Sequence record: ON568341.1
DNA length: 64,000 nucleotides
Reading direction: 5' to 3' (one strand)
Shown: piece after piece, positions 3 to 64,000 of the stretch
How the letters are laid out: each line of letters begins with the position of its first letter
Numbering within the stretch: the first letter of the stretch is position 1
Made by a program: the position numbers and the translations under genes
Notes under the pieces: model-generated
Told to the model about the DNA's origin: nothing
What the model saw: only the letters and a program-made list of their open reading frames with translations
The model's database searches: none

Positions 3-674
3 TTCCGTGATCTCTGGAAAGTATGGGCTAAAGATAATGATTATGATTACAAAGAAAAGAACTTCTATGATGATTTTGTACCTAATGAAGACCGTGGTGC
101 AGATGTTCATGAATTCTTTAAGATTAAAGAGTTCGTAAAACTTTGTAAGAAATATAACCGCCAGCGTGAGCGTTCAGTACAAGATAATATCATTGATACG
201 ATGGCAGATACTTACTATTATAGTAAAGCAATGCACATTGGTTACTATGGTAATTCAAGAGAAGCCTCTGTTATCGTTGATATCGACGGAACTCTTGCTC
301 ATAAATGGGGTCGTAATCCTTACGATGAAAGTACTGTACTACAAGATACACCAGATGAAGAAGTTATTTTGTCTATTATCGCTGAAGCAGTTTTCCATAA
401 ACGTAAGATTATTGTAATGAGTGGGCGTACTGAAGGGTGTCGTGCAGACACAGAACAGTGGCTTAAGAATTGGGGTGTTCCTTACGATGCATTGTTTATG
501 CGAGGCATCGATGATAAACGACCCGATGATGTGGTAAAATATGAGTTGTATATGAATAACGTCGTGCATCATTACGATGTTAAAAAAGTATACGATGACA
601 GATCACAAGTCGTATTCATGTGGCGTAAACTACTTGGATTAAAAGTGATGCAAGTTGCAGAAGGAAATTTCTGA
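3..674 (+). CDS. pseT: Polynucleotide kinase/3'-phosphatase (PNKP), 5'-truncated by the window edge
   Basis: The frame is open from position 3 and continues in frame into the listed ORF 201..674. It has the HAD motif DIDGTLA, SGR, RPDDVVK and the DDRSQVVFMWR...QVAEGNF ending typical of T4 PseT. Confidence 0.85.
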   Translation, partial: FRDLWKVWAKDNDYDYKEKNFYDDFVPNEDRGADVHEFFKIKEFVKLCKKYNRQRERSVQDNIIDTMADTYYYSKAMHIGYYGNSREASVIVDIDGTLAHKWGRNPYDESTVLQDTPDEEVILSIIAEAVFHKRKIIVMSGRTEGCRADTEQWLKNWGVPYDALFMRGIDDKRPDDVVKYELYMNNVVHHYDVKKVYDDRSQVVFMWRKLLGLKVMQVAEGNF

Positions 675-677
675 CAC

Positions 678-706
678 AAAAGGGATCAATGTATGATCCC
701 TTTTTC
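678..706 (+). terminator. Rho-independent terminator
   Basis: aaagggatca/tgatcccttt stem followed by a T-run. Confidence 0.8.
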
Positions 707-723
707 TTTTAAGGTATATTATA

Positions 724-900
724 ATGAATGTAAAAACACAGATGTTATTACAAAAAGAATACTTAGAAAATATAGAAATGTTCTATAGATTGTCTTTATA
801 CGAAAATAAACATAAAAAATATAACTTTTCTAAACAACTAACCACAAGTACTAATGATTATCTATTTTCATCAATGTTTTATGTGAGAGGTTTATTATAA
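724..900 (+). CDS. Hypothetical protein (58 aa, below ORF-track cutoff)
   Basis: ATG at 724; the TAA overlaps the next start at 900. Confidence 0.45.
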   Translation: MNVKTQMLLQKEYLENIEMFYRLSLYENKHKKYNFSKQLTTSTNDYLFSSMFYVRGLL

Positions 901-1157
901 TGGATAAATTTCACACAGATATAACACAGATAGGTAATCTTATCAATAGTCTAATTACTGATTTAGAAGAAAAGTACTTAGGTCGAAATGTATACGTTGA
1001 AATGTATGAAACATATGGTGTTATTGATATGATTTATTACAGTGCATTGAAGTGTGAAATACGTTTAACAGTATGTTTGTTTGAAAAAGATACATTCAAC
1101 AGAAGTACTGCAATTCGTCAGGTTGGTGTAGATGACATTGAATTATATGAGGAATAA
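900..1157 (+). CDS. Hypothetical small protein (family A)
   Basis: Coupled ORF; helix followed by DLEEKYLGRNVYV. Confidence 0.7.
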   Translation: MDKFHTDITQIGNLINSLITDLEEKYLGRNVYVEMYETYGVIDMIYYSALKCEIRLTVCLFEKDTFNRSTAIRQVGVDDIELYEE

Positions 1158-1411
1158 TGATGTTTGAACAGGACGTAGAGCTATTCAAAAGACATATTGA
1201 ATATTTGACTGTTTTAGAGAATGATTTAACCACAAAATACAAAGGAATTAGAGTCCAGTGTTGGTATGATGACTGGGATTATAAAAGGGAACTTACTATT
1301 GACCGAATTTATTTCAGTGATGGTGTACTGAATGTACATGGTGTAAATGATTTTGGTCATTCATATACATATTCTAATAATGCTAAATTTAAAAGGATCT
1401 GCAATGAATGA
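1157..1411 (+). CDS. Hypothetical small protein (family A)
   Basis: Coupled ORF; NDLTTKYKGIRVQC. Confidence 0.7.
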   Translation: MMFEQDVELFKRHIEYLTVLENDLTTKYKGIRVQCWYDDWDYKRELTIDRIYFSDGVLNVHGVNDFGHSYTYSNNAKFKRICNE

Positions 1412-1706
1412 ATATTATCATAATTTATTCGATTACATAAAACTAATAGATGATCTTTCTTTTGAATTTCTCAGTACTGAAAAAGTTGATGAACCTCTCT
1501 ATTATGATTGTATTAGTTCACTGTGTTTAGATGAAAAAGAGATATTAGCAAATAACTTACCATCCACGGTCTGTGTAATCAATGGTTCCAAGGCTGTGGT
1601 GTCTGAGGTTAATTTTCATAAATCACTTAATACAATTGTTTACAAGTTCGATAACACTTGGTTTAATCACGTAACTAGTAATATTAAATCTGTGAGATTT
1701 TTATGA
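1404..1706 (+). CDS. Hypothetical protein
   Basis: AAGGA RBS before ATG 1404; coupled to neighbours. Confidence 0.65.
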   Translation: MNEYYHNLFDYIKLIDDLSFEFLSTEKVDEPLYYDCISSLCLDEKEILANNLPSTVCVINGSKAVVSEVNFHKSLNTIVYKFDNTWFNHVTSNIKSVRFL

Positions 1707-1999
1707 ATATAAAAAAATTATTTGAACAAGTAAATTTATTGTACTTGTGTTCAGACGGCTCAGATAAGGAATATAGTGAAGTTTATTTAGAACTATTTAG
1801 AACTGAAATACATCTAATTCGAAGATACCTAATTGATAACAAAACTGAAGTAAAAGTTAGATACCATAATGGTACTTTAAAGAATGGTATAATTATTGGA
1901 TTGATAGTTACAAGAATGTCCAGTAATATTAAAGTTGCAGTAAGATTAATGACTGATGATGGTGTCTACACAATAGAAGCTAATGAGATTATATATTAA
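1703..1999 (+). CDS. Hypothetical protein
   Basis: ATGA overlap with the upstream gene. Confidence 0.7.
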   Translation: MNIKKLFEQVNLLYLCSDGSDKEYSEVYLELFRTEIHLIRRYLIDNKTEVKVRYHNGTLKNGIIIGLIVTRMSSNIKVAVRLMTDDGVYTIEANEIIY

Positions 2000-2305
2000 A
2001 TGGATATACAAACATTCAATAAACTAAAGTACTATGATAATGGTTTTGTATTAATAATTAACGAACTTGATAGTATACCATACGAATATCATAATCAAGT
2101 AATGAATATAGTAAAAAATATATGTGAAGAACTAAAAAGTATATTTAAAAATGAATATGTTTATGATTTAGGTAATAATAGAACAAAACTATACATAAAG
2201 AAATTCTGGGGAACACATTGTGGTTTGATGGTCGATTTGGGTTTAAGTTTAGACAATAATTTCGAATCATGTTCATTATATTTGGACGAAATGAGAATCT
2301 CATGA
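2000..2305 (+). CDS. Hypothetical protein
   Basis: Abuts the upstream stop codon. Confidence 0.7.
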   Translation: MDIQTFNKLKYYDNGFVLIINELDSIPYEYHNQVMNIVKNICEELKSIFKNEYVYDLGNNRTKLYIKKFWGTHCGLMVDLGLSLDNNFESCSLYLDEMRIS

Positions 2306-2362
2306 GACATAAGGACATTCGGTGATATAATTTGATTATATCATTAATAAGGAGAGGTTGAA

Positions 2363-2689
2363 GTGAATGGGTCGTTTTTAGAAATACTAGAAAAGACAAC
2401 TGGGATGCTTTCAAGTTCACTAATGCACATTTTCAGTACTAGTAATTTTTACGATTCGCGTGTGTTAGATGTAATTTGTAATAGCTATGTTGAATGTGTG
2501 TCTAATACAATATGTCCATTTAACGCTTATTCAAATGATGGTGTTGAAAAGTTTATTATATCCAAGATTCAATGTGGTTTTGGTGATTGGATAGTTCTAT
2601 GTGAACGTAGTGGTGTGTCTTTATACATCGAAGAAATTGGAAAATTTATATACAAAGGAGTAGAATATGTTAGTCCCAATTATTATTAG
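2363..2689 (+). CDS. Hypothetical protein
   Basis: GTG start after AAGGAGAGG. Confidence 0.65.
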   Translation: MNGSFLEILEKTTGMLSSSLMHIFSTSNFYDSRVLDVICNSYVECVSNTICPFNAYSNDGVEKFIISKIQCGFGDWIVLCERSGVSLYIEEIGKFIYKGVEYVSPNYY

Positions 2690-3314
2690 TAGTGCATATG
2701 TCATCGGTATTATTATTTCTGGTATGCTTGCATATAACTATAACAGAAGTATTCTAGGTTATGCAGTACTTGGTGCAGTTCTAAGCCCAGTAATTGCAAT
2801 TGGTGTTCTTATCATCTTAGGTGAGAAAAACACAAAATATTTTATTACTGAAGAACTTGATAAAATCACTCCAGCACCGGAGACGGTTATTCCAGAAGTT
2901 GAAGAAGAAGTAAAAGAAGTTGAAGTTCAAATGCAAGTTAAAGTACATAATACACTCGAAGAAACTGATCCTAAAGTTGTGGTGAATGTAGTTCCTGTCG
3001 TTGAAGATGTAAAACCAAAAGCCCAAAGATCCAAAAAAACCACTAAAACACAGAAAAATACTAAAACTGCAAAAAAATCACGTAACACTAAAGGTAAGAA
3101 TAAAGGGAAATCGACGGATGAACAACAACTAGGTGTTCATAACCATACTGCACAAATTACATCGGCAGCGGCAGCGGGGGCAATCGTAACATCACCAATC
3201 TACAACAATGATGATTACAGTGATTATAGTCGTCACAGTAGTTCCCCTTCTGATTCTTGTTCTTATGATAGTTCTAGCTCTGATTCAAGTTCATCTTCTG
3301 GAAGTTGTGATTAA
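2667..3314 (+). CDS. Membrane protein with Lys-rich linker and Ser/Asp-rich tail
   Basis: Two N-terminal hydrophobic helices; C-terminal DSSSSDSSSSSGSCD. Confidence 0.7.
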   Translation: MLVPIIISSAYVIGIIISGMLAYNYNRSILGYAVLGAVLSPVIAIGVLIILGEKNTKYFITEELDKITPAPETVIPEVEEEVKEVEVQMQVKVHNTLEETDPKVVVNVVPVVEDVKPKAQRSKKTTKTQKNTKTAKKSRNTKGKNKGKSTDEQQLGVHNHTAQITSAAAAGAIVTSPIYNNDDYSDYSRHSSSPSDSCSYDSSSSDSSSSSGSCD

Positions 3315-3643
3315 TGTCAATGAAACCACTAATTCAACATAATATTTTTTATAGTTCATTATTCAAAATACAAGATGATTTTTATCAGACGTTGAGTAAT
3401 GATCTTATAGGTAAAACTGTACGATATTCAGACCAATACATCAAACGTATGACAAGTCAGTATATTGACCCTGAATACGAATACGACATTGAACACATTA
3501 ATCCCAATACTAGAATGAAAATCATTGAGATATTTAAGAATGGGAGAACTATAGGTGCTGAAATTGAGTACTTGAATTGTGATTGTTACATAGATACTGA
3601 GTTGAGTTTAGATTATCTTGTTTTAGTGGATGATGAGGAATAA
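3314..3643 (+). CDS. Hypothetical small protein (family A)
   Basis: SNDLIGKTVRY motif; coupled. Confidence 0.7.
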   Translation: MSMKPLIQHNIFYSSLFKIQDDFYQTLSNDLIGKTVRYSDQYIKRMTSQYIDPEYEYDIEHINPNTRMKIIEIFKNGRTIGAEIEYLNCDCYIDTELSLDYLVLVDDEE

Positions 3644-3645
3644 TT

Positions 3646-3861
3646 ATGATAACATTTTTCGCAATATATGGATTTGTAACATTTGTTACATTTATAACCA
3701 ACTTTTTAGTACTTAATTGGGGTTGTTTTAAAGATGAAATCATGATTGCCATGAATCTCCAAACAGCAGCACTAATGGCTATTATTTGGCCTGTAACGTT
3801 AGTATACCTTTTTATTTCACTTACTCAAGATATTATTAACAAATATAAGAGAAAGAACTAA
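3646..3861 (+). CDS. Small membrane protein
   Basis: Two hydrophobic segments and an IIWPVTL motif. Confidence 0.7.
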   Translation: MITFFAIYGFVTFVTFITNFLVLNWGCFKDEIMIAMNLQTAALMAIIWPVTLVYLFISLTQDIINKYKRKN

Positions 3862-4118
3862 TGTTCAAAACCGACTTATCACATTTTCGATATCTTAGGT
3901 CTTTGGCTGATGATTTTATAAATGATCTTAAGCCAAAATATATTGGTCAAGAAGTACGATTAATAAACTCCAGAGGGTATGGAAAGTATATTATAACGGA
4001 TATGTATATTAGTGCTGGTGAGTGGTGTTTTAAAATTAACACTTATCTTAAAGATGGTTCTTTTGCTGGAACACAAGTTACTAAACATACTAATATTATA
4101 TGGTTGGAGCAACAATGA
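3861..4118 (+). CDS. Hypothetical small protein (family A)
   Basis: NDLKPKYIGQEVRL. Confidence 0.7.
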   Translation: MFKTDLSHFRYLRSLADDFINDLKPKYIGQEVRLINSRGYGKYIITDMYISAGEWCFKINTYLKDGSFAGTQVTKHTNIIWLEQQ

Positions 4119-4858
4119 AACACTTTTTAGAAGTAACCGTGCCTGATGATAAAGATTTATATATTGTAGGTGATTTGCATGGTAATGGTAAACTATGGGA
4201 TGCTACAGTAAAAGAATTTGGTATTACACACAATGATTATGTTTTCAGTGTAGGTGATGTTATCGACCGTGGAGAACAAAATTCAAAGCTCCTTTTTGAA
4301 TTTTTGTTCGGTGAAAATCGTTACATGATTGCTGGTAATCATGAGATGATGTGTGTTGATTCTGAAACACTTCGAGATTGGTATCATTGTTGGATAAGTA
4401 ATGGTGGTGATAAATTCCTTGATGAAGTTGGAGGGACAGGTATTCAATTCTTTCGTCAGTACTTGAAAGATTTACCTATGATTATCCAAATCAACCATAG
4501 AGGCTTGAAGATCGGGTTAGTTCATGCTGGAGTTCCTTTGGAATATACAACATGGGAACGATTTGTTAATGGGACAAAATCACTTAGTGCTGATATAGTT
4601 GATAAGTGCTTGTGGGATAGGAAAACATTCGATTATTGTAGGACAAATAATACTTATTATGCACCTAAGTTAGATGGAGTGCATTGTGTCTTTAGTGGAC
4701 ATACAGCAGTTACTGAACCACTCATTTATGGCAATCGCATTTGGATTGATAGTCAGTTCTTGACGGGTGACTTAACTCTCGCTACTCCACAAAGTGGTGG
4801 GATGAGATACTTACGTAAAGAAAAAGATGAGTACTCATTCAGTCGTTTCAAAAGGTAA
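4115..4858 (+). CDS. Ser/Thr protein phosphatase-type metallophosphoesterase (NinI/PphA-like)
   Basis: GDLHG, GDVIDRG, GNHE, HAG and SGHT motifs. Confidence 0.9.
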   Translation: MKHFLEVTVPDDKDLYIVGDLHGNGKLWDATVKEFGITHNDYVFSVGDVIDRGEQNSKLLFEFLFGENRYMIAGNHEMMCVDSETLRDWYHCWISNGGDKFLDEVGGTGIQFFRQYLKDLPMIIQINHRGLKIGLVHAGVPLEYTTWERFVNGTKSLSADIVDKCLWDRKTFDYCRTNNTYYAPKLDGVHCVFSGHTAVTEPLIYGNRIWIDSQFLTGDLTLATPQSGGMRYLRKEKDEYSFSRFKR

Positions 4859-4863
4859 TAATT

Positions 4864-5133
4864 ATGCATGATGTAGTTAAAAAATATTTGAATGATAGAT
4901 ATATCATGGAAAAATCTATTAATTCTATCCTAAAAGATCATGATAATCAAATACGTGAGATTCTATCAAATAAACTTATTGGTTGTTCAGTTGAGTTCAA
5001 CTACAAAAAGAATGTAGTGAAGATTGGAGTTATTAAACGTGTAGTTGCTGTTTATGACCAAAATGTATATGTTGAAATTGAATATGATGGTAAATTATCA
5101 CAATTAAGTACTGAAGATTTAACATTTTTATAA
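4864..5133 (+). CDS. Hypothetical small protein (family A, SH3-like)
   Basis: SNKLIGCSVEF...GVIKRVV. Confidence 0.7.
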   Translation: MHDVVKKYLNDRYIMEKSINSILKDHDNQIREILSNKLIGCSVEFNYKKNVVKIGVIKRVVAVYDQNVYVEIEYDGKLSQLSTEDLTFL

Positions 5134-5143
5134 GGAAATAGAA

Positions 5144-5371
5144 ATGAAAGTAATTCAAGTTATGGTAGAAAAATACCAAACTGAAGATGGTCGTATTTTT
5201 GATTCAGCTAAACAAGCTGAACATCATGAACGTATTATTTCGGGTACACGTAAAGTGTGTCCTACATGTAATGGAACACAACAAGTGCCGTCAGAAGATT
5301 ACCGCAGCTTTTATGCTTGTCCATACTGTGATGGGAAAGGCTATGTAGAAAAACAAGAGGTATGGAAATGA
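5144..5371 (+). CDS. DnaJ-type zinc-finger small protein
   Basis: CPTCNGT and CPYCDGKG (CxxCxGxG) repeats. Confidence 0.7.
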   Translation: MKVIQVMVEKYQTEDGRIFDSAKQAEHHERIISGTRKVCPTCNGTQQVPSEDYRSFYACPYCDGKGYVEKQEVWK

Positions 5372-5781
5372 AATTGTATTGCTTAACTAATATGTACTGT
5401 CAAGGTGTCCAAGCTGGTATTCAAGCATTTCATGCTGGTGTTAAACTAATCAAAGAATATGAAGGTACTGCTTTCAGTACTATGATTGATGAATGGTATA
5501 ATGAGCACGAAACTATTGTAGTACTAAATGCGGGTGGACATGATAAATTAAATTCTTATTATAAAGACCTTAACAAACAGGGAACAGTTCCGTTTGCCAA
5601 ATTCAATGAAGCTGGATTGAATGATGCTATTACATGTATCGCAGTACTGTGTACATCTGAAATGATTGAAGACATGGCTGTTATGCGTATGAATCTTCCT
5701 GCTGGTGATCAGCTAATGCAAGTGAAATATGGTGCATTGTTTGACACACTTAAAGCAATCAGTACGATGAGGACAATTTGA
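5368..5781 (+). CDS. Peptidyl-tRNA hydrolase type 2 (Pth2)-like protein
   Basis: GIQAFHA resembles the Pth2 AQxxHA motif; EW...TIVVL; PFAKFNEAG...ITCIAV. Confidence 0.55.
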   Translation: MKLYCLTNMYCQGVQAGIQAFHAGVKLIKEYEGTAFSTMIDEWYNEHETIVVLNAGGHDKLNSYYKDLNKQGTVPFAKFNEAGLNDAITCIAVLCTSEMIEDMAVMRMNLPAGDQLMQVKYGALFDTLKAISTMRTI

Positions 5782-6980
5782 TGGATTTTCCAGAGAAGTT
5801 ATTTGTTGCACGTTCCTATGTAAACCACAACCAAGTTGATGGTTTTATCATTGATGCAACCAAATCACACACAAAAGCATTTGAAACAAAGAAAGAAAGA
5901 GCAGAGTATTGGGCAAAGAAGAACAATCTTCCATCGTTGTTTATTGACAACGTTCCAACCACTGGATTTTGTGTAGTTGATAAATTAACAATTCATGCAC
6001 GAGAAACATATTTCACAATCCGTCACCCAGAAGGATTTGAATTTATGATTAGTGCAAAAAACATGAATGATTTAATTATCAATAATGATATCATTAAAGG
6101 TGTTTTTGTAGACCCAATGTTTTTTAACAATAACTTAGAATTGATTAATGGTAAAACAAAAACATTTGCTAAGTTAGTTGAAAAACAAAATAAAAAAGAA
6201 CAACAAAAAGAAACTGTGGCAAGTCTTAAAGTTGGTGATGGTTTCACTTATCTTAAAGAAGATTACTATTACTGCGGTAAAGTACATGCAATTTGTATCA
6301 AGAAAACTAAAGAATTTGCATATCCAGATAAAAGTTCAATATATCATTTAGTTTTTAATAGTACTCGTGGAACTTATGCATTGAATCAACGTTTGGATAA
6401 TTACAATCTGGAACCTCGTGCACTCTTGAATAAGAAGACTACGACAGATGAAGAAATTAAACTTGCTAATGAATTTTGGCAAAGCTATAGAATAAACAGA
6501 CATAACCCATTAGGTGAATCTAACATTCCAGTACTGGTACACAATAAATCATTTAAAGCAAAAGACCTTAAAATTAAATACGAAGAAATAAATGTTGATG
6601 ATCTTATGAACAATGGACGTTTCAACGAAAACGTACCATTCATGACTAAAGATAATGAACAATCTTATCGCGTATTTTTTGGTGTAAGTGATAATACGAC
6701 ACGTAGTTATTATGGACGTAGCGGGGATTATACTATTCATTATATTGATAAATTTGAACGCTTTAGTGCATACCCAGTTCAAATTGATGATAATGGAATT
6801 ATGTCAATGGATGTTGATATTAATGAGCACACATCATTTAGTACATGGAATGGTTATCGTTCTCCATTCTTTCCACCAAATGAACGCAAAACATCAAGTA
6901 CTCGTTACTATCAGGATAAACCATGTCACGTCCAATTATCAATTAGCAATCCACTTTTTATTGGAAAGTATTATCTATAA
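5781..6980 (+). CDS. Hypothetical protein (about 400 aa)
   Basis: Long coupled ORF; no motif recognised. Confidence 0.8.
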   Translation: MDFPEKLFVARSYVNHNQVDGFIIDATKSHTKAFETKKERAEYWAKKNNLPSLFIDNVPTTGFCVVDKLTIHARETYFTIRHPEGFEFMISAKNMNDLIINNDIIKGVFVDPMFFNNNLELINGKTKTFAKLVEKQNKKEQQKETVASLKVGDGFTYLKEDYYYCGKVHAICIKKTKEFAYPDKSSIYHLVFNSTRGTYALNQRLDNYNLEPRALLNKKTTTDEEIKLANEFWQSYRINRHNPLGESNIPVLVHNKSFKAKDLKIKYEEINVDDLMNNGRFNENVPFMTKDNEQSYRVFFGVSDNTTRSYYGRSGDYTIHYIDKFERFSAYPVQIDDNGIMSMDVDINEHTSFSTWNGYRSPFFPPNERKTSSTRYYQDKPCHVQLSISNPLFIGKYYL

Positions 6981-6991
6981 AGGAATATACA

Positions 6992-8413
6992 ATGAGCATT
7001 TTAGCAATTCTTGAAAGCATTAAAAATACTAGCAGTACTCTGGGTAAAAAAGCTATCCTTGAACAAAACAAAGATAACCAAACATTACAAAAAGTACTGA
7101 AATATACACTAGACCCTTCAATTGTAAGTGGGTATAAAAAGCTACCACAAGCTGATGATGTCTACCAACATATGACATTAGATGAAGCAATTGATAAGCT
7201 AGAATGCATTTACAAACGTGGTGTAACCGGAAATGCTGGACGTGACTTTATTGCTTCAGTACTGGGTTCTGTATCTGAAGATGATCAGGAAGTTCTACGA
7301 AGAATGCTCACTAAGAACCTTGATTGTGGTATTCAAGAAAAGAACTGCAATGATGTGTTCGGGAAAGGTTTTATCAAAGACGAACCATACATGCGTTGTT
7401 CTTTGATTGACAAAAAGACTGCAAAGAACATTAACTTCAAAGATTATGGTTATGCTATATCAGAAGTGAAAATGGATGGTCAGTACTTGAACCACGTTGT
7501 CATTAATGGTTCATTAACTTCTACATCCCGTAATGGTAAACTATACGACTTCCTGGGTTGTCGTGATGGTGAGATGGCAGGTCTTGCTCACATCATCCAA
7601 AGTAAAGATGAACGTTTTAGTAGTGGTGTAGTCTTTATGGGTGAAGGTGTAGTACTGGACAATGATGGAGAAACCATTCTCCCACGCACTACTGGCAATG
7701 GTATAATTCAGAAAGCTGGAAAAGATAGTATCAGTCAGAATGAAGCAATGCGTACTGTATTTGTTCTATGGGATGTTGTTCCATATGATGCATTTTGTGA
7801 AGGTGTATGGGATGTAAAACGTAAAGAACGTCGCGAGATCTTAGTAGATGCAATTAACGAACTCAGTAGTGATTTTGTTCGTATGGTTGGATTCCGTAAA
7901 GTTCTAAACATCAAAGAAGCATTTGAGTACAATAGTGAACTAATGAACGAAGGTGAAGAGGGTTCAGTACTGAAATGTGAAGATGGTATCTGGAAATCTC
8001 ACACTTCTCCTAAGCAATTGAAAATGAAACTTAAAATGCAATTGGACTTGCGTATTGTTGGTTTCAATGAAGGTGAAGGTAAGCGTAAAGGTAGCCTTGG
8101 TTCTTTACAACTGGAAAGTGCTTGTGGTACATTGAAAGTTAATGTAGGTACTGGAATTAAAGAGAAAGACGCAGAATGGACGTTTAAAACCATTTGGGAA
8201 AGAATGCAAGAACTCATTGGTCAAGTAGTAACCGTGCAGTGCAATGATATAGTGTATGATCAGCGTACTGGCGAACCATCACTATTTTTACCTGTGTTTA
8301 TTGAATTTAGATTTGACAAAAACACTTGTGACGACTATACTCGTATCTTAGAAATTCGTGATAGTGCTGTTGAAGTTTTTAGTAATGCTATCATAAAATC
8401 GTTAACTAACTAA
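6992..8413 (+). CDS. lig: ATP-dependent DNA ligase
   Basis: EVKMDG adenylation motif, EGEG, EEGSVLK, and a C-terminal OB fold (LFLPVFIEFR). Confidence 0.93.
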   Translation: MSILAILESIKNTSSTLGKKAILEQNKDNQTLQKVLKYTLDPSIVSGYKKLPQADDVYQHMTLDEAIDKLECIYKRGVTGNAGRDFIASVLGSVSEDDQEVLRRMLTKNLDCGIQEKNCNDVFGKGFIKDEPYMRCSLIDKKTAKNINFKDYGYAISEVKMDGQYLNHVVINGSLTSTSRNGKLYDFLGCRDGEMAGLAHIIQSKDERFSSGVVFMGEGVVLDNDGETILPRTTGNGIIQKAGKDSISQNEAMRTVFVLWDVVPYDAFCEGVWDVKRKERREILVDAINELSSDFVRMVGFRKVLNIKEAFEYNSELMNEGEEGSVLKCEDGIWKSHTSPKQLKMKLKMQLDLRIVGFNEGEGKRKGSLGSLQLESACGTLKVNVGTGIKEKDAEWTFKTIWERMQELIGQVVTVQCNDIVYDQRTGEPSLFLPVFIEFRFDKNTCDDYTRILEIRDSAVEVFSNAIIKSLTN

Positions 8414-8424
8414 AAAAGAATAAT

Positions 8425-9495
8425 ATGTATACTATTGATGATGAAATAATTAATAATAAATTTATTTCTGATACATACAATGCATATGATATATCTAAAA
8501 TAATTCTCAAGGAAAAGTATCCTCAATTTGATTGGGATACTATTGACCTTGAGAATTTAAAAACTGATGATTATTGTAAAAATGACATTATTGGATATAT
8601 ACAAGATAAAAAAAATATAAAATTGTATGGCATTAAATGTGAAAAATGCTCCCAAAATTACAAACTAAATGGTCTAGGGATATATTTTTCATATAAAGGA
8701 AATTTAGTTAAGGGTAAGTGTCCATGTAATTGTAGTAAGCATAAATTCTACACAAAATATCAAAATATTTTTTTGATTAATGAAAAAGCAAAAACGTTAA
8801 ATTATATTTTTTGTGGTTTTGTTGATGAGTATAAAGGTAAAAATAAAACAAAAATAAAATTATATTGTCCAAATAACAAACATGGTATATGGGATACAAC
8901 ATTAATATATAGTTTTATAGAATCAAACAATGGATGTATTAAATGTGCACATGAATCAGTCGGGTTAAGTAATAGTATAACTTTCGCAGATCATATAAAA
9001 GATTTTTTATCAACTGGTAAGTATAATAAAAATACAAAATTTTGGAAATCTAATAAGATTGACAGTAGAGGATATAATAATTATTGGTTTTGCCAATGTC
9101 CAATATGTAAAACTACAGTTGAGGCATCTACTACAAATCTTAAAAGTGGGAAAGTATCATGTTTATGTAACGGGAACACCCAGCAACAGGGATATATAAA
9201 TTTAGTACTTGACAATGATATACCAATTGCATTAAAATATGGAATAACATCTAATACAGAAGTCAGAGAAAAAACACAAAATCGCAATTCAATCTATGAT
9301 ATTGTAAACTGTGGTGTCTGGGAGTTTGAATCTTCTTTGTTATGTAAATCAGCAGAAGCGGAATGTAAAAGAACTTTCTCACCAGTACTTGAAGCTCGTG
9401 AAATGAAAGATGGATATACTGAAACTACATCACCATTAGATATTGACAAAATCATTGAAATATATGAAAATTGGGGTGGTGTGCGAATAAAATAA
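8425..9495 (+). mobile_element. Free-standing homing endonuclease (GIY-YIG-like C-terminus, Zn-ribbon repeats)
   Basis: Very AT-rich; several CxxC pairs; C-terminal GYINL...KYGIT...E...E...DGYTET; inserted directly after the ligase. Confidence 0.65.
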
Positions 9496-9507
9496 CCGGA
9501 GGTAATT

Positions 9508-10299
9508 ATGAAATTTGTTGTAACGTCAGACGTACACGGTGGCACTGATTACCTCCATAGTGGTGATTACAGTGATACAGTACTGTTCATTGCTGGAGAC
9601 TTCGATGAAGTTAAACGCAGTCGTTACCGTACTGGTATCGAATCACTATGTAAGCAGTTCAAAAATGTAGTGCTGGTTCCTGGCAATCACGAATACTATG
9701 GTTCTAATATCCACAAAACGCATAAAGTTCTATCTGACATGCAAGATGAGATTCCCAATTTCATCTTTTTGCAAAACAAATTTGTATGGCTGGATGGGGT
9801 ACTTCTTGTTGGTAGTACTCTGTGGACAGACTTCGATAAAGGTAACTCTTTGACTAAGTTTGATGCTCGTCAAAAGATGAATGATTATAAACATATCCGT
9901 CATGGAACAACATCCGAGCCTTGGCGTAAGAAGTTGACACCAGATGATACGGAGTTCATGCATTATAAAGATAAACAATTTATTAAAAATTCTATTGACA
10001 CGGCTCGCTTTATGCATGATAATGATTTCAAGGTAATTGTGATTACACATCACGCACCAAGTTATCAAAGTGTTTCACCAAAATATAAAAATGATTCCCT
10101 GAATGGCTGTTACTGTTCAGATATGGATCAGTACATTGAAGATTTGGGTGCTGATATTTGGATTCATGGTCATGTTCATAGTAGCTTTGACTACCACATT
10201 GGTAAGACACGTATCATTTGTAATCCACGAGGCTATGAATCGTACAGTGGTGCTTGTGAGAATTTTGATTACAATCCTAAATTAGTATTTGAAATTTAA
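9508..10299 (+). CDS. Calcineurin-like metallophosphoesterase
   Basis: SDVH, AGD, GNHEYY, HHAP and HGHVH motifs. Confidence 0.9.
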   Translation: MKFVVTSDVHGGTDYLHSGDYSDTVLFIAGDFDEVKRSRYRTGIESLCKQFKNVVLVPGNHEYYGSNIHKTHKVLSDMQDEIPNFIFLQNKFVWLDGVLLVGSTLWTDFDKGNSLTKFDARQKMNDYKHIRHGTTSEPWRKKLTPDDTEFMHYKDKQFIKNSIDTARFMHDNDFKVIVITHHAPSYQSVSPKYKNDSLNGCYCSDMDQYIEDLGADIWIHGHVHSSFDYHIGKTRIICNPRGYESYSGACENFDYNPKLVFEI

Positions 10300-50555: not shown

Positions 50556-50673
50556 ACTTAAACACTTGAAAATAACGTTTTAGTACTGTAGAAAGTCCGA
50601 TGAGGCTTTTGCAAAATGGCCTCTTTGCCATCTTTGTGATTGCCCCGTCTTAACAATCAACAAAGGAGGCGTT

Positions 50674-51600: not shown

Positions 51601-51617
51601 AAAAAGGAAGGTGAAAT

Positions 51618-51950: not shown

Positions 51951-51958
51951 GATAGACT

Positions 51959-51988
51959 AAAGGGACAGATTAATTCTGTCCCTTTTCT
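51959..51988 (+). terminator. Rho-independent terminator
   Basis: aagggacaga/tctgtccctt stem. Confidence 0.85.
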
Positions 51989-52003
51989 TATGGAGTTTTA
52001 ATT

Positions 52004-52399: not shown

Positions 52400-52412
52400 C
52401 AGAGGAATTGTA

Positions 52413-52598
52413 ATGGAATATACCATATGTGTAATTGTATGTATCGTAGCCTTACTTGCAGGAGTTGGTGTGATGATTTACTGTGATGCGGAACCCAGTA
52501 CAGAAACAGGAACAACTATTGAACTTAAGCCTGGTGTTAAGGTAAATGATTCATATTGTTACGATCCACATAGTAATAAGTATGTGATTTGTCTATGA
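52413..52598 (+). CDS. Small membrane protein
   Basis: N-terminal transmembrane helix. Confidence 0.65.
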   Translation: MEYTICVIVCIVALLAGVGVMIYCDAEPSTETGTTIELKPGVKVNDSYCYDPHSNKYVICL

Positions 52599-53005
52599 AA
52601 AAGTTTGATATTAAACCTATGATCGATGCTATCGAAATTAAATTAAAAAATACTAAAAAGACAGATAGTACATGTTTGTTCTTTAGCTTAGATAAAATGT
52701 ATTATGAAACACACGTGTCAAGTTATGATAGAACAGGAAATCTCTTCATCCGTACTTATAACATATTTTATAGTGACGATGTTTTTATGATAGATATAAA
52801 TCTGGATGAAAGTATAGTGTTGATGTATATTGAGGATGTTCAATCAACAGAACAACGAAACGGGACTCTTCCTATTGCTGCTACAGAGGAAGAGTTTATG
52901 CAATATCAGTTCATTGATGATACCTTTGGCATTGACTTTGACACATATCAGAGTATAATGAGGGTATACGAACTTTATGAGGATTATGTGATTGGACGTT
53001 ACTAA
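52595..53005 (+). CDS. Hypothetical protein (family C)
   Basis: EEEFMQYQFIDDTFGID. Confidence 0.7.
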   Translation: MKKFDIKPMIDAIEIKLKNTKKTDSTCLFFSLDKMYYETHVSSYDRTGNLFIRTYNIFYSDDVFMIDINLDESIVLMYIEDVQSTEQRNGTLPIAATEEEFMQYQFIDDTFGIDFDTYQSIMRVYELYEDYVIGRY

Positions 53006-57464: not shown

Positions 57465-58256
57465 ATGTCTTACAATTATATGGGTGGAAATCCAGATGCT
57501 CCTAACTTTGATCATCGTGAAAAACTGAAAGATGTTATCACTCAAATGTTGGGAGCAGGTGCAGTTGAGGTAGAAATTACTGATGGTCAATTAGAAATTG
57601 CAATTGATAATGCTGTATCAAATTACAGAGCGTGGAGTTCTGCTTCTAAAGAAGAAGCTTTTTTAAATATGAAATTTTATGATTCACAATCTGTATATAT
57701 GCTCCCAACTGAAGTTGAAATAGTTAAAAAGATTTACCGCTATGGTAATGGTTATTTAAGTTCTGGGTCAGGTAACAGCGTAGACCCATTCTCATTGGCA
57801 TTCACGAATACATATCTATTGACGTCGGCTAGGAATGCAGGTGGATATGATCTAACAACTTATGATTTCAGCTTTCAATTTCAAGAATTGGTTGGTCGTA
57901 TGTTTGGACGTGAAATTATATTCCAATTTAACCCAATGACTAAGAAACTTATTATTGATCGTGATATTCGCGGTACAGAAGAAGTATTACTACATGTGTA
58001 TCATAATATTCCAGAACCATTATTGTTCCAACGTCAGCAAAGCTACCCGTGGCTTCGTGATTGGGCATTGTCTGAAGCAATGATTATGCTTGGTCGTAAC
58101 CGTGCTAAGTTTGCTAGTTTGCCTGGACCACAAGGGACATTTTCAATGGATGGTGATACATTAAGAAATGAAGGTATCCAATTACAAGAACAACTAAAAG
58201 AACAGTTGAAGCGATATAAAGATGGTGGAGAACCACTTGGAATGATTATCGGGTAA
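57465..58256 (+). CDS. Neck/head-completion protein (T4 gp13-like)
   Basis: KLKDVI..MLGA..VEVEITD.Q+..AI..A; WLRDWALSEA..MLG.NRAKF..LPG.GT..MDG. Confidence 0.8.
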   Translation: MSYNYMGGNPDAPNFDHREKLKDVITQMLGAGAVEVEITDGQLEIAIDNAVSNYRAWSSASKEEAFLNMKFYDSQSVYMLPTEVEIVKKIYRYGNGYLSSGSGNSVDPFSLAFTNTYLLTSARNAGGYDLTTYDFSFQFQELVGRMFGREIIFQFNPMTKKLIIDRDIRGTEEVLLHVYHNIPEPLLFQRQQSYPWLRDWALSEAMIMLGRNRAKFASLPGPQGTFSMDGDTLRNEGIQLQEQLKEQLKRYKDGGEPLGMIIG

Positions 58257-58284
58257 ATTTTAAACATTAAAAAAAGAGTACTAT

Positions 58285-60279
58285 ATGAATAATGAAGAAT
58301 TGAAAAAACTTTTGTTGTCAAAACATATTAATTCATGGGTACATTTATACAAAGGGGACTCTCATGTGAGAGATCTCCTTTCTGTTTTTGGAATAGAACC
58401 AAAAACTGATTTCGAAATATATAAAATTCTATATATGTTCATGAATGATATAACAACAGTTCCAACTGCATATTGTGGAAAAAAAGCAAGATACAAAAAT
58501 TTTCAAAAAGGATTTTATAAATTTTGTGATGATTATGTAATTAATAAGAAAAATACGTGTAATGTATGCCATGAGATGTATTATAAAAATCGAACTAATA
58601 AAACAAAATCAACATTAATGAATATGTATGGTGTATCTAATGTATCCCAGATCCAAGAAGTAAAACAAAAGAAAGAAAAAACTAACATTGAACGTTATGG
58701 TGTCTCTACTAATTTACAGACAACAGAATCTAAAGAGAAAATCAAACAAACTAATATAGAGCGATATGGATGTGAATATCCAAATCAAAACCCTGAAATA
58801 TTCAATAAAGTAAAAGAAACAAATTTAAAAAAGTATGGTGTTGAATTCCAAAGTAAAAGAAATGAAGTAAAAGAGAAAGCCAAAAATACAAATATATTAA
58901 GATACGGAACTGAGTATTCTTTATCATCACCGACTATTCGCGAAAAAATCAATAAAACAAATCTTGAACGATATGGTGGAAACCCACTATCAAATAAAAT
59001 TATCCAAGATAAAATAAAAAACACCAACACATTGAAGTATAATTCATTTTATCCAATGAGCAATATGAGTATTCAGGAAAAAGTTCATAATACCAATGTG
59101 GAACGATATGGTGTAAAATACCCAGCCCAAAATAATTCTATCATTGAAAAAATGAAAGAAACCACAAAAAATAGATATGGTTCAGAACACTACTCACAAA
59201 CAGATGAGTATAAAGATAAAATATCACTTGCCCGTCTAGACGAAAGATATAATATAATTGTTGCAAATATTGATAAAAACTATATTCCATTATTTGAAAA
59301 TACCGATCTGATTATGAAAGTTAATACAGACGAATACCCATTTTGGTGTGAGTATTGTGATGATTTGTTTTATAGTAAGTATAAAAATCATAAAGTGAAA
59401 TGTAAGTGTCAGAAAAATAATGGTCATTCCTTGAAAGAGAAAGATTTAGTTGATTATATAAAATCATTAATACCAAATACCGAAATCATAGAAAATGACC
59501 GTTCAGTACTGAAACCTAAAGAGTTGGATGTGTATATCCCTGACCGAAATCTAGCTATTGAATTTAATGGTGTGTATTGGCATAATGATGAAAATGTCAA
59601 TTCTACTAAACACCAAGATAAGGTATTGGATTGTTTAAAACATGGGGTGAATCTTATTCACATTTATGAAGATGAATGGGATAACCCATTAACAAATAAA
59701 ATAATCAAGGAACGTTTAAAGAATAAACTTCTAGTGTCAAATAGAATTTATGCTAGAAAATGTACTGTTAGAAATATAGACAAACAAGTAAGTAATATGT
59801 TTACTAAATCACACCATATTCAAGGTGTTGCACAAGCAAGTATTCACATTGGACTTTACTATGGAAGTGAGTTGGTTGCAGTTATGACCTTTGGTAAATC
59901 AAGGTTTGATAAAAACTATGAATATGAATTAATCAGATACTGTTCATCCGGTACAGTTGTTGGTGGTGCATCAAAATTACTAAAATATTTTGAAACAGTA
60001 TATAATCCACAATCATTATTGACATATGCGGATATGGATTGGAGTAGTGGTGATCTTTATACAGTTCTAGGCTTTGAGTTTGATAGTTATACAGAACCAG
60101 GATATTTTTATTATGACCCACAAACACATGAGAGGATTTCACGTCAGAAATGTCAAAAACATAAATTGGTCAAGAAAGGTTATGATATTAACTTAACCGA
60201 GAGACAAATTTGCTGTGATGTGTTGGGATATTATAAGATTTACAACTCTGGTAATATAAAATACACAAAAAAATATTAA
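58285..60279 (+). mobile_element. Hef-like homing endonuclease with TNxERYG repeats
   Basis: About nine repeats of 22-23 aa; ELDVYIP...AIEFNGVYWH nuclease motif; C-terminal ARKC...HIQG...GGASKLL...YAD..WS.G.Y..LGF. Confidence 0.75.
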
Positions 60280-60280
60280 T

Positions 60281-60624: not shown

Positions 60625-60641
60625 TTTCATGGAGAAATATT

Positions 60642-61268
60642 ATGGAAAGACAAATAATCGCAATTAATGGAACAATAGGAAGTGGAAAAGATACTTTTGC
60701 AAAAACATTTATTGAAAATGGATATACAAAAATGTCATTTGCTACCAATTTAAAAGACTCAGTATCTTCTATTTTTGGGTGGGATCGTGAAATGCTTGAA
60801 GGAACGACTAAGGAAAGCCGCATGATTCGTGAAAAACCGGATAAGTACTGGTGTGAAAAATTGGGGCGTGATGATGTATCCCCTCGATGGGTATTACAAA
60901 ATTATGGTACTAATATACTACGTAAGTATTTTCATAATGATATTTGGGTATTCAGTTTAGAAAAATCTATGCAAGAAGTAAATGGAAATATCATCATCAC
61001 TGATTGTCGTTTTCCTAATGAATTAAAAATGATTAGATCTCAACATGGTACGATTATTGAAGTGCAACGTGTACTTCCACATTGGTATGGATTGGCTGCA
61101 TCTTATAATAAAGGAAATATTAAAATTAAACCAGTAGAACTTGAATCAGTACATGAATCAGAGTGGGCTTGGATTGGAATAAACAAACCTGATATAATTA
61201 TTCATAATAGCAGCACATTAGATGACTTACATCAAAAAGCAATGGCGATTATTTATTCTAATATGTAA
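60642..61268 (+). CDS. Deoxynucleoside monophosphate kinase (T4 gp1-like)
   Basis: AINGTIGSGKDT P-loop, SFA..LKD, SPRWVLQNYGT, ITDCRFPNE, HESE; GGAG RBS before ATG 60642. Confidence 0.88.
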   Translation: MERQIIAINGTIGSGKDTFAKTFIENGYTKMSFATNLKDSVSSIFGWDREMLEGTTKESRMIREKPDKYWCEKLGRDDVSPRWVLQNYGTNILRKYFHNDIWVFSLEKSMQEVNGNIIITDCRFPNELKMIRSQHGTIIEVQRVLPHWYGLAASYNKGNIKIKPVELESVHESEWAWIGINKPDIIIHNSSTLDDLHQKAMAIIYSNM

Positions 61269-61365
61269 AATATAAACAATAAAGACTTGTCATTTAGATC
61301 CTTCAATAAATAAGATTATACGAATATATAATTCGAACAACCAATTATTTTTGGAGGATTTTAAT

Positions 61366-64000
61366 ATGGCAGGAGATCTACTCTCACCTGGCGTGTCTAT
61401 CTCAGTAACTGATAACAGTATGAGTACTGCTGCTGCTCCAGGCACAGTACCACTATTTGTAATTGCTACTGCTGAAGACAAACTTGTTCCTGGTAGCAAT
61501 GCAATTGCTGTAGGAACTACTAAAGCAAATGCTGGAAAACTACAGCTTTTGACATCACAAAAAAGCTCACTTGATACCTATGGTACACCAATTTTCCAAA
61601 CGAATAACGGTTCTGTTGTTCAGGGGGATGAACTAAACGAATATGGTCTACATGCAGTATATTCTTATCTAGGGATTACTAATCGTGCATATGTAATTCG
61701 TGCTGACATTGATCTAGCACAATTAGCACCAAGTGCACAAGCCCCAACTGGTCCAGTTTCAAATGGCACTTTGTGGTTTGATACTGCACAATCACAAGTT
61801 GAGGCATATGTAGCTAAGAAAGACAGCCCTAGTAGTTTTTATGATTGGCAGCTTAAACCAGTCACTATTGTAAGTGCAGAAGAAGTTGAGGATGTAAGTT
61901 TAGTTGGTTTGAATGTTGATGATTTGGTTCTACGTTATAAACCAAGTAATGGTCAGATGCTAATGTATAAACGTTCCGCTTCTGGTTTGGTGCAAATGGA
62001 AACTTACCTATCCCCTATCAACAAAGTTCCAGTAGGCTCCACTGTGGAGAAAGGAAACATTTGGATTCGTGATGGTTATACCCAAAATGGGTCAAACTAT
62101 TTTGGCACTCGTTTTGTTATTAAACGTTATGCATCTTTAACTCAAGTTTGGAATATTGTGCCAGCATTTACTGGTAATTCATTCCAAGAAATTGAAGCGA
62201 AAAGTGGTGTTCTAAATAATAGTTATATCGCATCTCGCTTTGATGATGATAGCAAAAGTTTCTCTTTTTATATTCAAAGTGCAAAACTATCAACAATTAG
62301 TGCTCCTGCTTTGCCATTAGGTGAAACCATTATTGAACAAGCAGGTGATGATAGTTATATGATTTTCACTTATTTGAACAAATCTGTTAAAGTTCTAGCA
62401 GTACCTAATGGTGGTGTTATCAATACACAAACTATCATCAATAATCTAAATTCTAATGCTGAAGTAATTAACGATGGTTTCAAATTCAAACGTGAAACTA
62501 ATGGAGGTTTGGTTATCACCAATACTAAAGGGTATAGTTTCAAAATTACCCAAAGTGGTGATGATATTTTTGCAGCAGATGAACTACAAAAACTAACTGT
62601 AAACAGTAACAACTACTCCCAAATCAATCTTAAAAACTTCCGTGTTAGTTATGAAGTACCACGTAATATCGCAAAAGATGGTACATTATGGTATAATTTT
62701 GGAAACTCTGATAATTTAAATGTTACTTTGTATGTAGCTGATGTAGCAAACGACAAATGGGAGCTTGTTCAAGACGAAAACAAATATGTACAAGTCGATG
62801 AGCCAGCAGCAGATCGTACAATTTGGGTATGCCCTCTTTCACAAGGTATCGATGGATACGAATTCTATCGTAATGTCGATGGTGAATGGGTTAAACTTGA
62901 CAATACAGATCAAAGCACATTAAATGGTATGGTTTTCCATGACTTTAATACTCCATCAAAAGTTCCCGCTGCTGCATTGTATCAAAATGGTATGTTGGCA
63001 GTAGACTTAGGCAATACTGAAGGTGTTGTTAAGAAAATGGTTAATGGAAAATGGGAAGTTGTTAGTGGTGTAAGTATTGATGGTGCTGGTTTGTTTGGTC
63101 GTGCTGCACAACGTCAACTTGTCGTCGAAGCACTGGCAGCAGTTATTGTTGGTAATGATGAAATTCGTTCCGAATTTATTGATTTCAATCTAATTTGTGT
63201 ACCTGGTTATGTTGAAACTCTAGCTGAATGTGTAACTTTAAATACAGATCGTAAAGAAACTGCATTTATCGTAACTGACGTTCCTGCACGATTGGACCCA
63301 ACTGGTAATGGTAGTGCTGTTCAGAAATGGGCTACTAATGCTAATAATGCACCAAGTAATGGCCCAGTTGGTAGAACAACTGCATATGATTATGCAGCCC
63401 AGTATATGGGGTGGTGTCTAAGTACAAACGTAGATGGTATGGAAGTTGCTGTACCAGGAAGCACTATTGCAATGCGTACTTATGCATATAGTGATAGCGT
63501 TAGTTATGTGTGGTATCCACCTGCTGGTACAACTCGTGGCGTTGTGACTAATGCTGCAAGTACTGGTTTCATTAATAGTGAAGGTGAATATCAACCAGTT
63601 GTATACAATCAAGGCCAACGTGATGTTATGTATACAAACAACATTAACCCAATTGCAATGCGTCCGAATCGTGGCTTACTTGTGTATGGAGATAAAACGC
63701 TATCTGCTAATCAAACATCAGCACTAAGCCGCGTTAACGTCGCACGTTTAGTTGTTTATATTCGTCGTCAACTTGAAATTATTTCTGAACCATTCCTATT
63801 CCGTTTGAATACCCCAAGTACTCGTCAGGAATTCAGTGGTGTAGTTAATAGTTTTTTGGCAGAAATTGTTCAACAACAAGGTCTATATAATTTCGCAGTA
63901 GTTTGTGACGAAAGTAACAACACTTCTGAACGTATTGACCGTAATGAACTTTGGATGGATATTGCAATCCAACCAACCAAGTCTATTAACTTCATATACG
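61366..64000 (+). CDS. Contractile tail sheath protein, 3'-truncated by the window edge (absent from the ORF track)
   Basis: GGAGG RBS; LSPGVSISVTD; WYPPAG..RG; NINPI...G..VYGDKT...RVNVARL...CDESNNT..RIDRNEL..DIAIQPTKSINFIY. Confidence 0.93.
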   Translation, partial: MAGDLLSPGVSISVTDNSMSTAAAPGTVPLFVIATAEDKLVPGSNAIAVGTTKANAGKLQLLTSQKSSLDTYGTPIFQTNNGSVVQGDELNEYGLHAVYSYLGITNRAYVIRADIDLAQLAPSAQAPTGPVSNGTLWFDTAQSQVEAYVAKKDSPSSFYDWQLKPVTIVSAEEVEDVSLVGLNVDDLVLRYKPSNGQMLMYKRSASGLVQMETYLSPINKVPVGSTVEKGNIWIRDGYTQNGSNYFGTRFVIKRYASLTQVWNIVPAFTGNSFQEIEAKSGVLNNSYIASRFDDDSKSFSFYIQSAKLSTISAPALPLGETIIEQAGDDSYMIFTYLNKSVKVLAVPNGGVINTQTIINNLNSNAEVINDGFKFKRETNGGLVITNTKGYSFKITQSGDDIFAADELQKLTVNSNNYSQINLKNFRVSYEVPRNIAKDGTLWYNFGNSDNLNVTLYVADVANDKWELVQDENKYVQVDEPAADRTIWVCPLSQGIDGYEFYRNVDGEWVKLDNTDQSTLNGMVFHDFNTPSKVPAAALYQNGMLAVDLGNTEGVVKKMVNGKWEVVSGVSIDGAGLFGRAAQRQLVVEALAAVIVGNDEIRSEFIDFNLICVPGYVETLAECVTLNTDRKETAFIVTDVPARLDPTGNGSAVQKWATNANNAPSNGPVGRTTAYDYAAQYMGWCLSTNVDGMEVAVPGSTIAMRTYAYSDSVSYVWYPPAGTTRGVVTNAASTGFINSEGEYQPVVYNQGQRDVMYTNNINPIAMRPNRGLLVYGDKTLSANQTSALSRVNVARLVVYIRRQLEIISEPFLFRLNTPSTRQEFSGVVNSFLAEIVQQQGLYNFAVVCDESNNTSERIDRNELWMDIAIQPTKSINFIY

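Follow-up and report, generated by a model that had tools for sequence, protein, structure and literature searches.

The question raised by the stretch of phage DNA studied here is why a single short palindrome, AGTACT, should be so frequent in it, and what might read that word, given that phages are known to avoid short palindromes. The stretch (64,000 nucleotides, hereafter the window) corresponds with 100% identity to bases 186001-250000 of Escherichia phage UE-S1 (ON568341.1), a 358-kb Asteriusvirus jumbo myovirus, and its relatives PBECO4, 121Q, G17 and Sharanji are 88-93% identical to it. The window has 33% G+C and is 93% coding, with 104 of its 106 annotated genes on the plus strand. 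An earlier note on the sequence had reported an excess of AGTACT and of a longer palindrome around it, and had proposed DNA-level selection for a dispersed site, possibly one that recruits the host factor SlmA.

Two chance models were used: dinucleotide-preserving shuffles (n=100) and a permutation of synonymous codons within each gene, by which proteins, dipeptides and per-gene codon usage are kept. Expectations for longer words (k = 7-12) were taken from an order-3 Markov model. UE-S1 was sampled over 188 kb in total (up to 104 kb and from 166 to 250 kb), and 350 kb of TH47, a relative with ~85% identity over the window, were analysed. The clade survey covered 52 IMG/VR relatives, each by ~22 kb of the region that includes the tail-sheath gene, and 50 kb of E. 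coli K-12 served as a small host sample. UE-S1 and its sister ECO103 4-12-1 were compared with TH47 as outgroup in order to assign gains and losses of sites by parsimony, the branch lengths being 0.047 for UE-S1 and 0.052 for ECO103 4-12-1; recombination may blur single calls, and the control made with all hexamers has the same bias.

A palindrome in excess in the window and across the clade

AGTACT was found 114 times in the window (1.78 per kb), first at 330 and last at 63817-63822, and the 29 copies counted earlier in bases 1-10,000 are exact. Dinucleotide shuffles contained 16.5±4.2 copies with a maximum of 28, so that none of the 100 reached the observed number, and the synonymous-codon shuffle yielded 39.0±4.7 with a maximum of 53, corresponding to a z of about 16 for 114. 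The latter model is conservative, because the codon usage that it preserves is itself inflated by AGTACT. The earlier note had held that the enrichment should disappear under such a shuffle, or be shared by many other palindromes, if selection on the DNA were not its cause; it persists, and no other palindrome of 6 bp is enriched. Among all 4,096 hexamers AGTACT ranks top, at 7.1x against 1.56x for the next-best 6-bp palindrome, its one-mismatch variants lie at 0.3-2.9x, and words containing it lead every ranking from k = 7 to k = 12.

All three reading frames take part, as had been claimed, and no single codon pair is responsible. As Ser-Thr 54 copies were observed against 18.0 in the codon shuffle, as Lys/Gln/Glu-Tyr 21 against 5.2 and as x-Val-Leu 33 against 11.2, which amounts to an enrichment of 3-4x in each frame. 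Non-coding DNA reaches about 5x, with six copies against the 1.24 expected from its own dinucleotides, the other 108 of the 114 being genic. AGT-ACT encodes 54 of the 111 Ser-Thr pairs, 16 being expected from codon usage, and the dipeptides Ser-Thr and Val-Leu are themselves over-represented just 1.28x and 1.46x. An artefact of codons or dipeptides is thus ruled out by the protein-preserving shuffle together with the counts per frame and in non-coding DNA. A dispersed repeat similar to repetitive extragenic palindromes or miniature inverted-repeat transposable elements, or else a repeated protein motif, was also rejected, since information falls to about zero beyond ±4 bp and the sites occur in three frames and many peptide contexts.

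Placement along the window is random. Gaps between sites follow an exponential distribution (Kolmogorov-Smirnov, KS, p=0.35) and reveal neither a regular interval nor helical phasing. The number of sites per gene agrees with a Poisson distribution (chi2 79 on 105 degrees of freedom), and within genes the sites are spread uniformly (KS p=0.88), with no bias to gene starts or ends.

The excess extends to the relatives. TH47 holds 909 copies in 350 kb against 103 expected (8.8x), and the 188 kb of UE-S1 hold 352 against 46. In the roughly 15 surveyed loci with a tail sheath ~70% identical, RaK2 and contigs of GAP32/CBB size included, AGTACT is enriched 5-8x in every locus and is the top hexamer in all that are RaK2-like; at a sheath identity of 48% or less it falls to 0.3-1.9x in nearly all loci. 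One exception is a 20-kb contig (IMGVR_UViG_3300027985_000659, sheath 38% identical) with 18 copies against 3.5 expected, an excess that contigs of similar sheath identity lack. The excess spans phages of Escherichia, Klebsiella and relatives, and in this clade it is conserved although synonymous sites have reached saturation. In E. coli K-12 three copies were counted in the 50-kb sample (0.06 per kb) against 1.8-2.6 per kb in the phages, which makes the word at least ten times denser on phage than on the sampled host DNA. Over-representation combined with discrimination from host DNA is what is expected of an address motif, the host sample being small.

This enrichment stands out from a general loss of palindromes. 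In the window 25 of the 64 six-bp palindromes are absent, the absentees being GC-rich; in the 188 kb of UE-S1 palindromes with four G or C number 72 against 317 expected, 15 of them with zero copies. GCGC is missing altogether, with 79 copies expected in UE-S1 and 200 in TH47, and GTAC is over-represented 2x; CACGTG and GTGCAC are at expectation despite the general avoidance. The clade thus purges almost every GC-rich palindrome, yet holds one AT-rich palindrome at 8-30 times expectation. As in known cases of restriction-site avoidance, AGTACT is a 6-bp type II palindrome (ScaI/Eco255I) in a genome dominated by avoidance; however, the sign is reversed, and a restriction-modification target under avoidance was rejected on account of the 7-9x over-representation.

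Sites are also retained in evolution. The 163 kb that align contain 305 sites in UE-S1 and 403 in TH47. Among the window sites of UE-S1 that could be aligned to TH47, 67 of 94 (71%) are conserved, compared with 45% of all hexamers. Synonymous third positions are better conserved inside sites than elsewhere, for ACT (85% vs 64%, p=0.011), for GTA (89% vs 66%, p=0.017) and for TAC (100% vs 74%, p=0.04). On the ECO103 4-12-1 branch seven sites were lost and 17 gained, a loss of 11% against 27% for all hexamers (p=0.004), i.e., slower. Protected synonymous positions and this low loss are the marks of purifying constraint. The proposal of DNA-level selection for a dispersed binding or modification site is accordingly supported by enrichment in all frames and in non-coding DNA, by two-fold symmetry, by conservation in the clade and by the protection of synonymous positions.

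Extended motif and early-promoter boxes

In the flank logo of the 114 sites, C is found at -1 in 45% (51 sites) and G at +1 in 50% (57 sites), about 0.4 bit, and the outer flanks are weak, T-rich on the 5' and A-rich on the 3' side, with an optimum of (T)TC-AGTACT-GA(A). The flanks mirror each other though almost all genes lie on one strand, which argues against a cause at the level of RNA or translation. Longer words in the window likewise exceed expectation: CAGTACTG with 26 copies against 2.9, CAGTACTGAA with 13 against 0.4, the 10-mer TCAGTACTGA with nine against 0.3 and the 12-mer TTCAGTACTGAA with four against 0.1. TH47 has 20 copies of the full 12-mer, where independent flanks would predict about 4.5. 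The 12-bp palindrome lies at 7963-7974 inside a DNA ligase gene, at 25301-25312 and 31186-31197 (both exact matches and part of the Markov excess), and at 59502-59513, where it is the sole AGTACT within a homing-endonuclease-like gene. The 10-bp palindrome was placed at 1471-1480, with more copies starting at 12188, 29653, 46144 and 53053. All of these positions had been reported before and are exact. The 12-bp consensus itself is real, but most copies of the site match it in part.

A second arrangement is seen outside the window. In TH47 a 24-kb zone at 88-112 kb carries about 7 AGTACT per kb; its open reading frames (ORFs) are short, its non-coding stretches are long, and sigma-70 promoters that are nearly perfect are numerous. 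Here and elsewhere in TH47, the distance from the end of AGTACT to an exact TATAAT is 1 nt in 16 cases and about 21 nt in 19, with 1.8 expected per offset. The promoters so formed read AGTACT-TTGACA-N9-10-AGTACT-G-TATAAT, or ...AGTACT-GG-CATAAT. Of the two boxes the upstream one shares the first T of the -35 element, the downstream one (~-19 to -14) abuts the -10 element, and they are about two helical turns apart. The excess of site pairs 11-25 bp apart in TH47 is largely explained by these dual boxes. In UE-S1 the class was located at genome coordinates 63027, 63507, 83096 and 96043, none being inside the 64-kb window, and it is conserved in UE-S1, TH47, 121Q and RaK2. When early regions were compared in TH47, RaK2, 121Q and a metagenomic relative, the -10 box was counted at 41 and the -35 box at 22 of the 122 promoter-like sites, and 14 sites combine the two.

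AGTACT numbers 72, 68 and 86 sites per 10-13 kb in the early DNA of RaK2, 121Q and the metagenomic relative, respectively, or 22-30x expectation, and density in early regions reaches 6-7 sites per kb. A scan of IMG/VR for TTGACA-N9-11-AGTACTGTATAAT returned 85 stretches, in which multiple matches were confined to RaK2 (9) and 121Q (11); contigs with a single match had no AGTACT excess, except for fragments of RaK2-like phage. One -35-adjacent box is also present in the Pectobacterium phage CBB. At 104386-104436 of TH47 four tandem 13-bp repeats, ATC(T/A)TTCAGTACT, form the array ATCTTTCAGTACT within a ~1.3 kb non-coding promoter cluster with several consensus promoters and more full TTCAGTACTGAA copies; no known RNA family from Rfam was matched in the dense non-coding early region that includes this array.

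Since the boxes keep fixed core-promoter positions in coliphages and in a Klebsiella phage with a sheath 69% identical, they appear operator-like: a palindrome overlaps core promoter elements at fixed positions and is conserved among relatives. AGTACT is thus kept at the DNA level throughout the RaK2/Asteriusvirus clade, is symmetric and constrained, and is embedded in promoters.

Candidate readers of the site

AGTACT is tentatively regarded, at somewhat less than an even chance and from sequence evidence, as the recognition site of one two-fold symmetric, sequence-specific protein that would bind double-stranded DNA and would most likely be phage-encoded. On the promoter boxes a dimeric putative binder would occlude RNA polymerase, and early promoters would be shut off; the hundreds of intragenic copies would let it load along the whole phage chromosome. 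The sites might then serve as a sequence 'address' by which unmodified phage DNA is told apart from that of the host, so as to be organised, silenced or protected, and the copies in the window would represent the dispersed intragenic part of the proposed system. More doubtful, though possible, is the complete proposal, in which ~900 boxes per genome would be read by a predicted phage protein that coats only phage DNA, silences early promoters and organises or shields the replicating chromosome, in phages with unmodified DNA and no phage nucleus. Protein binding, phage origin, repression of early promoters and coating of the chromosome are all what we infer here. The DNA of phage fEgEco12 is reported to be cut as predicted by 10 restriction enzymes (PMC13070987). 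This normal cutting indicates that the DNA is not globally hypermodified.

The working model is taken from phi29 p6 and SPO1 TF1, viral proteins that load along the viral chromosome, prefer viral DNA and repress early promoters. The likeness is drawn from general knowledge, and it has limits, as p6 reads bendability or supercoiling and TF1 hydroxymethyluracil DNA, and neither reads a discrete enriched hexamer. Noc-binding sites and matS resemble AGTACT in being short palindromes that are read by one dimeric protein and mark a DNA territory; however, they are 13-14 bp long, number tens per genome, lack an excess at the hexamer level and are cellular. Chi, KOPS and DNA-uptake sequences are each one short word over-represented genome-wide, genic in all frames and acting as self-identifier, but these words are asymmetric and biased in orientation, whereas AGTACT is palindromic and has a promoter-embedded subclass. 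To our knowledge, sequence-addressed viral chromatin has not been described for any phage, and an enriched 6-8 bp palindrome that serves a phage both genome-wide and inside promoters would be new relative to the known address motifs and coating proteins. AGTACT is without mention in the searchable literature on these or other jumbo phages, to which logos in figures do not belong; neither a palindrome excess nor a promoter box is described in the passages retrieved from the papers on UE-S1, Sharanji, fEgEco12, RaK2 and CBB. Those on UE-S1, Sharanji, RaK2 and CBB do not mention palindromes, those on UE-S1, Sharanji and RaK2 hold no relevant mention of ScaI, and the box is absent from the promoter passages of the CBB paper. 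If a phage protein reads the box, it would show how jumbo phages with ordinary DNA and no nucleus recognise their own chromosome, give a handle on the switch from early to middle transcription, and yield an operator of 6-8 bp that could be transferred together with its binder.

Several observations weigh against the proposed binder. The intragenic sites follow no spacing rule and have no positional bias, so that use of the sites is not distinguished from mere tolerance or drive. Information is concentrated in the central 6-8 bp, as is usual for restriction or modification enzymes or for ribbon-helix-helix proteins more than for dimers of the helix-turn-helix type. The evidence on promoters was gathered outside the window and mostly in relatives, the boxes might be contacts of RNA polymerase instead of operators, and the records of TH47 and ECO103 are 'UNVERIFIED' in GenBank. 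Ten ORFs upstream of the phage sigma factor, examined as binder candidates, gave no Pfam match, and the HTH_37 regulator CBB_511, the only HTH regulator annotated in the early region of CBB/GAP32, was rejected as binder, there being no homologue in Asteriusvirus or RaK2; the candidates examined are a small part of roughly 600 ORFs. Finally, on the UE-S1 branch 35 sites were lost and nine gained, a loss of 38% against 24% for all hexamers (p=0.002), i.e., faster, and the constraint is therefore not universal. AGTACT is protected in the clade, and this constraint is relaxed or reversed in the UE-S1 lineage. Of the 33 coding losses on this branch 21 are synonymous, mostly GTA to GTT; an excess of non-synonymous changes from AGTACT to AGTTCT was rejected, as these are mostly the synonymous GTA to GTT in the Val-Leu frame. 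Loss of a methyltransferase was rejected as the cause of this decay, both phage enzymes being intact in UE-S1 and TH47.

That AGTACT is instead the target of a phage DNA-modifying enzyme, the mark itself being functional through methylation-sensitive early promoters or self-marking, is considered improbable. A strict, contiguous 6-bp palindrome is typical of type II modification specificity, and promoters regulated by Dam offer a parallel to boxes placed in -35 and -10 regions. The phage has two methyltransferases, an N6-adenine enzyme of the Dam family and a C5-cytosine enzyme that contains an intein, and neither is damaged in UE-S1 or TH47. The latter enzyme (UES1_076, UE-S1 50728-52608, outside the window) has an intein with a Hint and a LAGLIDADG homing-endonuclease domain and a full-length match in TH47. 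RaK2 DNA is reported as methylated (PMC3622015). However, Dam enzymes of PF05869 normally act on GATC, and the cytosine methylation of RaK2 is reported at CpG (PMC3622015), which is not present in AGTACT. Modification alone would give no reason for an 8-fold excess, 5-methylcytosine would deplete the site by deamination, and no AGTACT-specific enzyme was found, the phage methyltransferases pointing to GATC and CpG.

A host factor other than SlmA, i.e., a transcription factor or nucleoid protein of Enterobacterales that the phage uses to drive or time its early promoters, is quite improbable as the reader. Early promoters must work with host proteins only, and the boxes are conserved in Escherichia and Klebsiella phages, with the one -35-adjacent box in CBB. 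Against this, we know of no enterobacterial factor with AGTACT specificity, a host factor of limited copy number would be far outnumbered by the roughly 900 sites that each genome copy brings, and a box abutting the -10 element occupies a repressing and not an activating position.

The excess might also be a functionless by-product of biased mutation or repair, either by repair of the very-short-patch (VSP) type linked to a methyltransferase or by double deamination of methylated GCGC to GTAC, to which a very small probability is given. VSP repair is an established route to an over-represented palindrome, and the E. coli excess of CCWGG (Dcm/Vsr) is similar in that one palindrome is over-represented amid general palindrome avoidance. 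The absence of GCGC with the two-fold excess of GTAC in UE-S1 and TH47 fits deamination, and the random placement of intragenic sites fits drive. Unlike in the CCWGG case, the T:G neighbour words are not depleted in the phage (AATACT 1.05x, AGTATT 1.29x), and gains and losses involve all six positions and not one type of mismatch. The missing GCGC (about 200) are too few for roughly 1,300 extra GTAC, and of AGCGCT only seven would be expected. UES1_191, the one annotated 'endonuclease' that was checked, is a Pyr_excise protein, i.e., a pyrimidine-dimer glycosylase of the T4 endonuclease V type and not Vsr. As repair bias also leaves the fixed promoter positions unexplained, repair or mutation drive is unlikely.

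Scarcely probable is the explanation that the promoter boxes are extra RNA-polymerase contacts, AGTACTG supplying the TG of an extended -10 element, with the intragenic excess separately caused. T4 early promoters also have extra conserved positions, and in the variant AGTACTGGCATAAT the TG falls precisely where an extended -10 element has it. In AGTACTGTATAAT, the more frequent variant, the TG is however shifted by one base, no polymerase contact is known for the upstream box at -35, and the genome-wide excess concerns the identical palindrome, flanked by C and G in the same way.

The last candidate is host SlmA, which according to the earlier proposal would be recruited via the AGTACT core and activated against FtsZ, so that division is blocked during infection. 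The known hosts of characterised clade members (Escherichia, Klebsiella, Cronobacter, Pectobacterium) are Enterobacterales, which carry SlmA. The central 6 bp of the SlmA-binding site (SBS) GTGAGTACTCAC are identical to AGTACT (PMC3020112), and like the phage sites SBSs are dispersed, mostly genic palindromes. Sharanji-infected cells filament, DNA fills the cell, and no known division inhibitor was found (PMC11895373). However, according to Tonthat et al. SlmA needs G1, T2, A4 and G5 and a purine at position 3, position 6 being the most tolerant (PMC3020112), and the phage motif is the opposite: strict at position 6, with C preferred at 3 and no G-T at 1-2. G at -1 was found in only 11 of 114 sites in the window and 62 of 909 in TH47. 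The outer bases essential to SlmA are depleted, the left flank GTR being found in 0 of 114 window sites (3.9 expected) and 17 of 909 in TH47 (29 expected), and the right flank YAC in 1 of 114 and 10 of 909 (33 expected), respectively; GTRAGYRCTYAC had no match in the window or 350 kb of TH47 (414 kb). Roughly 900 sites per genome copy, i.e., hundreds in 350 kb against about 50 in 4.6 Mb, are far more than it would take to engage a protein for which about 50 sites on the chromosome suffice, and SBSs avoid promoters in E. coli (PMC3020112), whereas phage boxes sit inside them. At the level of sequence SlmA thus does not suit as reader and is given hardly any probability; the filamentation seen with Sharanji keeps the question open at that low level, and the sequence gives no reason to assign the phenotype to SlmA.

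Individual sites and neighbouring genes

The six non-coding copies of the window were placed individually. The one at 27519-27524 (ttcAGTACTact) lies upstream of the gene 27556-27966, and that at 28235-28240 directly precedes an annotated terminator hairpin (28247-28268). Two share the gap between the genes 43238-43636 and 43997-44254 (minus strand), at 43783-43788 and 43974-43979, and a further copy 25 bp past the latter, at 43999, is inside the minus-strand gene. A sigma-70 promoter close to the consensus (CTTGACT-N17-TATAAT) lies ~30 nt upstream of the copy at 50582-50587. The sixth, at 58277-58282, precedes the start codon of the homing-endonuclease-like gene by two nucleotides and arose, by parsimony, on the UE-S1 branch. 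The closest pair of sites occupies 30495-30510 (10 bp start to start); other close pairs are 22722/22740 (18 bp), 53032/53055 (23 bp) and 43974/43999 (25 bp). A decayed site is present at 2777-2782 on the plus strand, where the window reads AGTTCT and both ECO103 4-12-1 and TH47 read AGTACT, a synonymous change from GTA to GTT; further losses on the UE-S1 branch are at 9726, 17893, 20505, 27880, 33288, 33516, 34851, 42100, 45771 and 62391.

Counting AGTACT is also a simple means of recognising members of the clade and, in their genomes, stretches acquired recently. An 8-kb island of TH47 (72000-80000), in which about 20 copies would be expected at the mean density of the genome, is free of the word and consists of a run of minus-strand genes of ~165-212 aa (phrog_19795, 30243, 28680, 30978); it may be recently acquired DNA. 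In a more distant locus (IMGVR_UViG_3300033072_000363, sheath 48% identical) the top palindrome is GGTACC, with the same GTAC core, at 15 copies against 3.9. TH47 also has another dispersed repeat, GGCTGACCGAAGTCAACC, whose core is matched exactly about 10 times; in the window no copy was found at up to two mismatches.

Two homing endonuclease genes poor in sites had been described for the window. One of them, the plus-strand gene 58285-60279 (DUF7487), does match homing-endonuclease PHROGs (phrog_3339/559), but its single site against 3.6 expected (P=0.13) is no significant shortage, and depletion of sites in mobile genes of the window was rejected on this ground. The protein encoded before it (57480-58256) matches the PHROG 'head-tail adaptor Ad2' at 720-964 of 976 only, i.e., in the C-terminal quarter. 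A second homing endonuclease gene was not recognised: the sole long minus-strand gene (14282-16183), one of two genes on that strand in the window, encodes a protein of 633 aa with six Big_2 immunoglobulin (Ig)-like domains.

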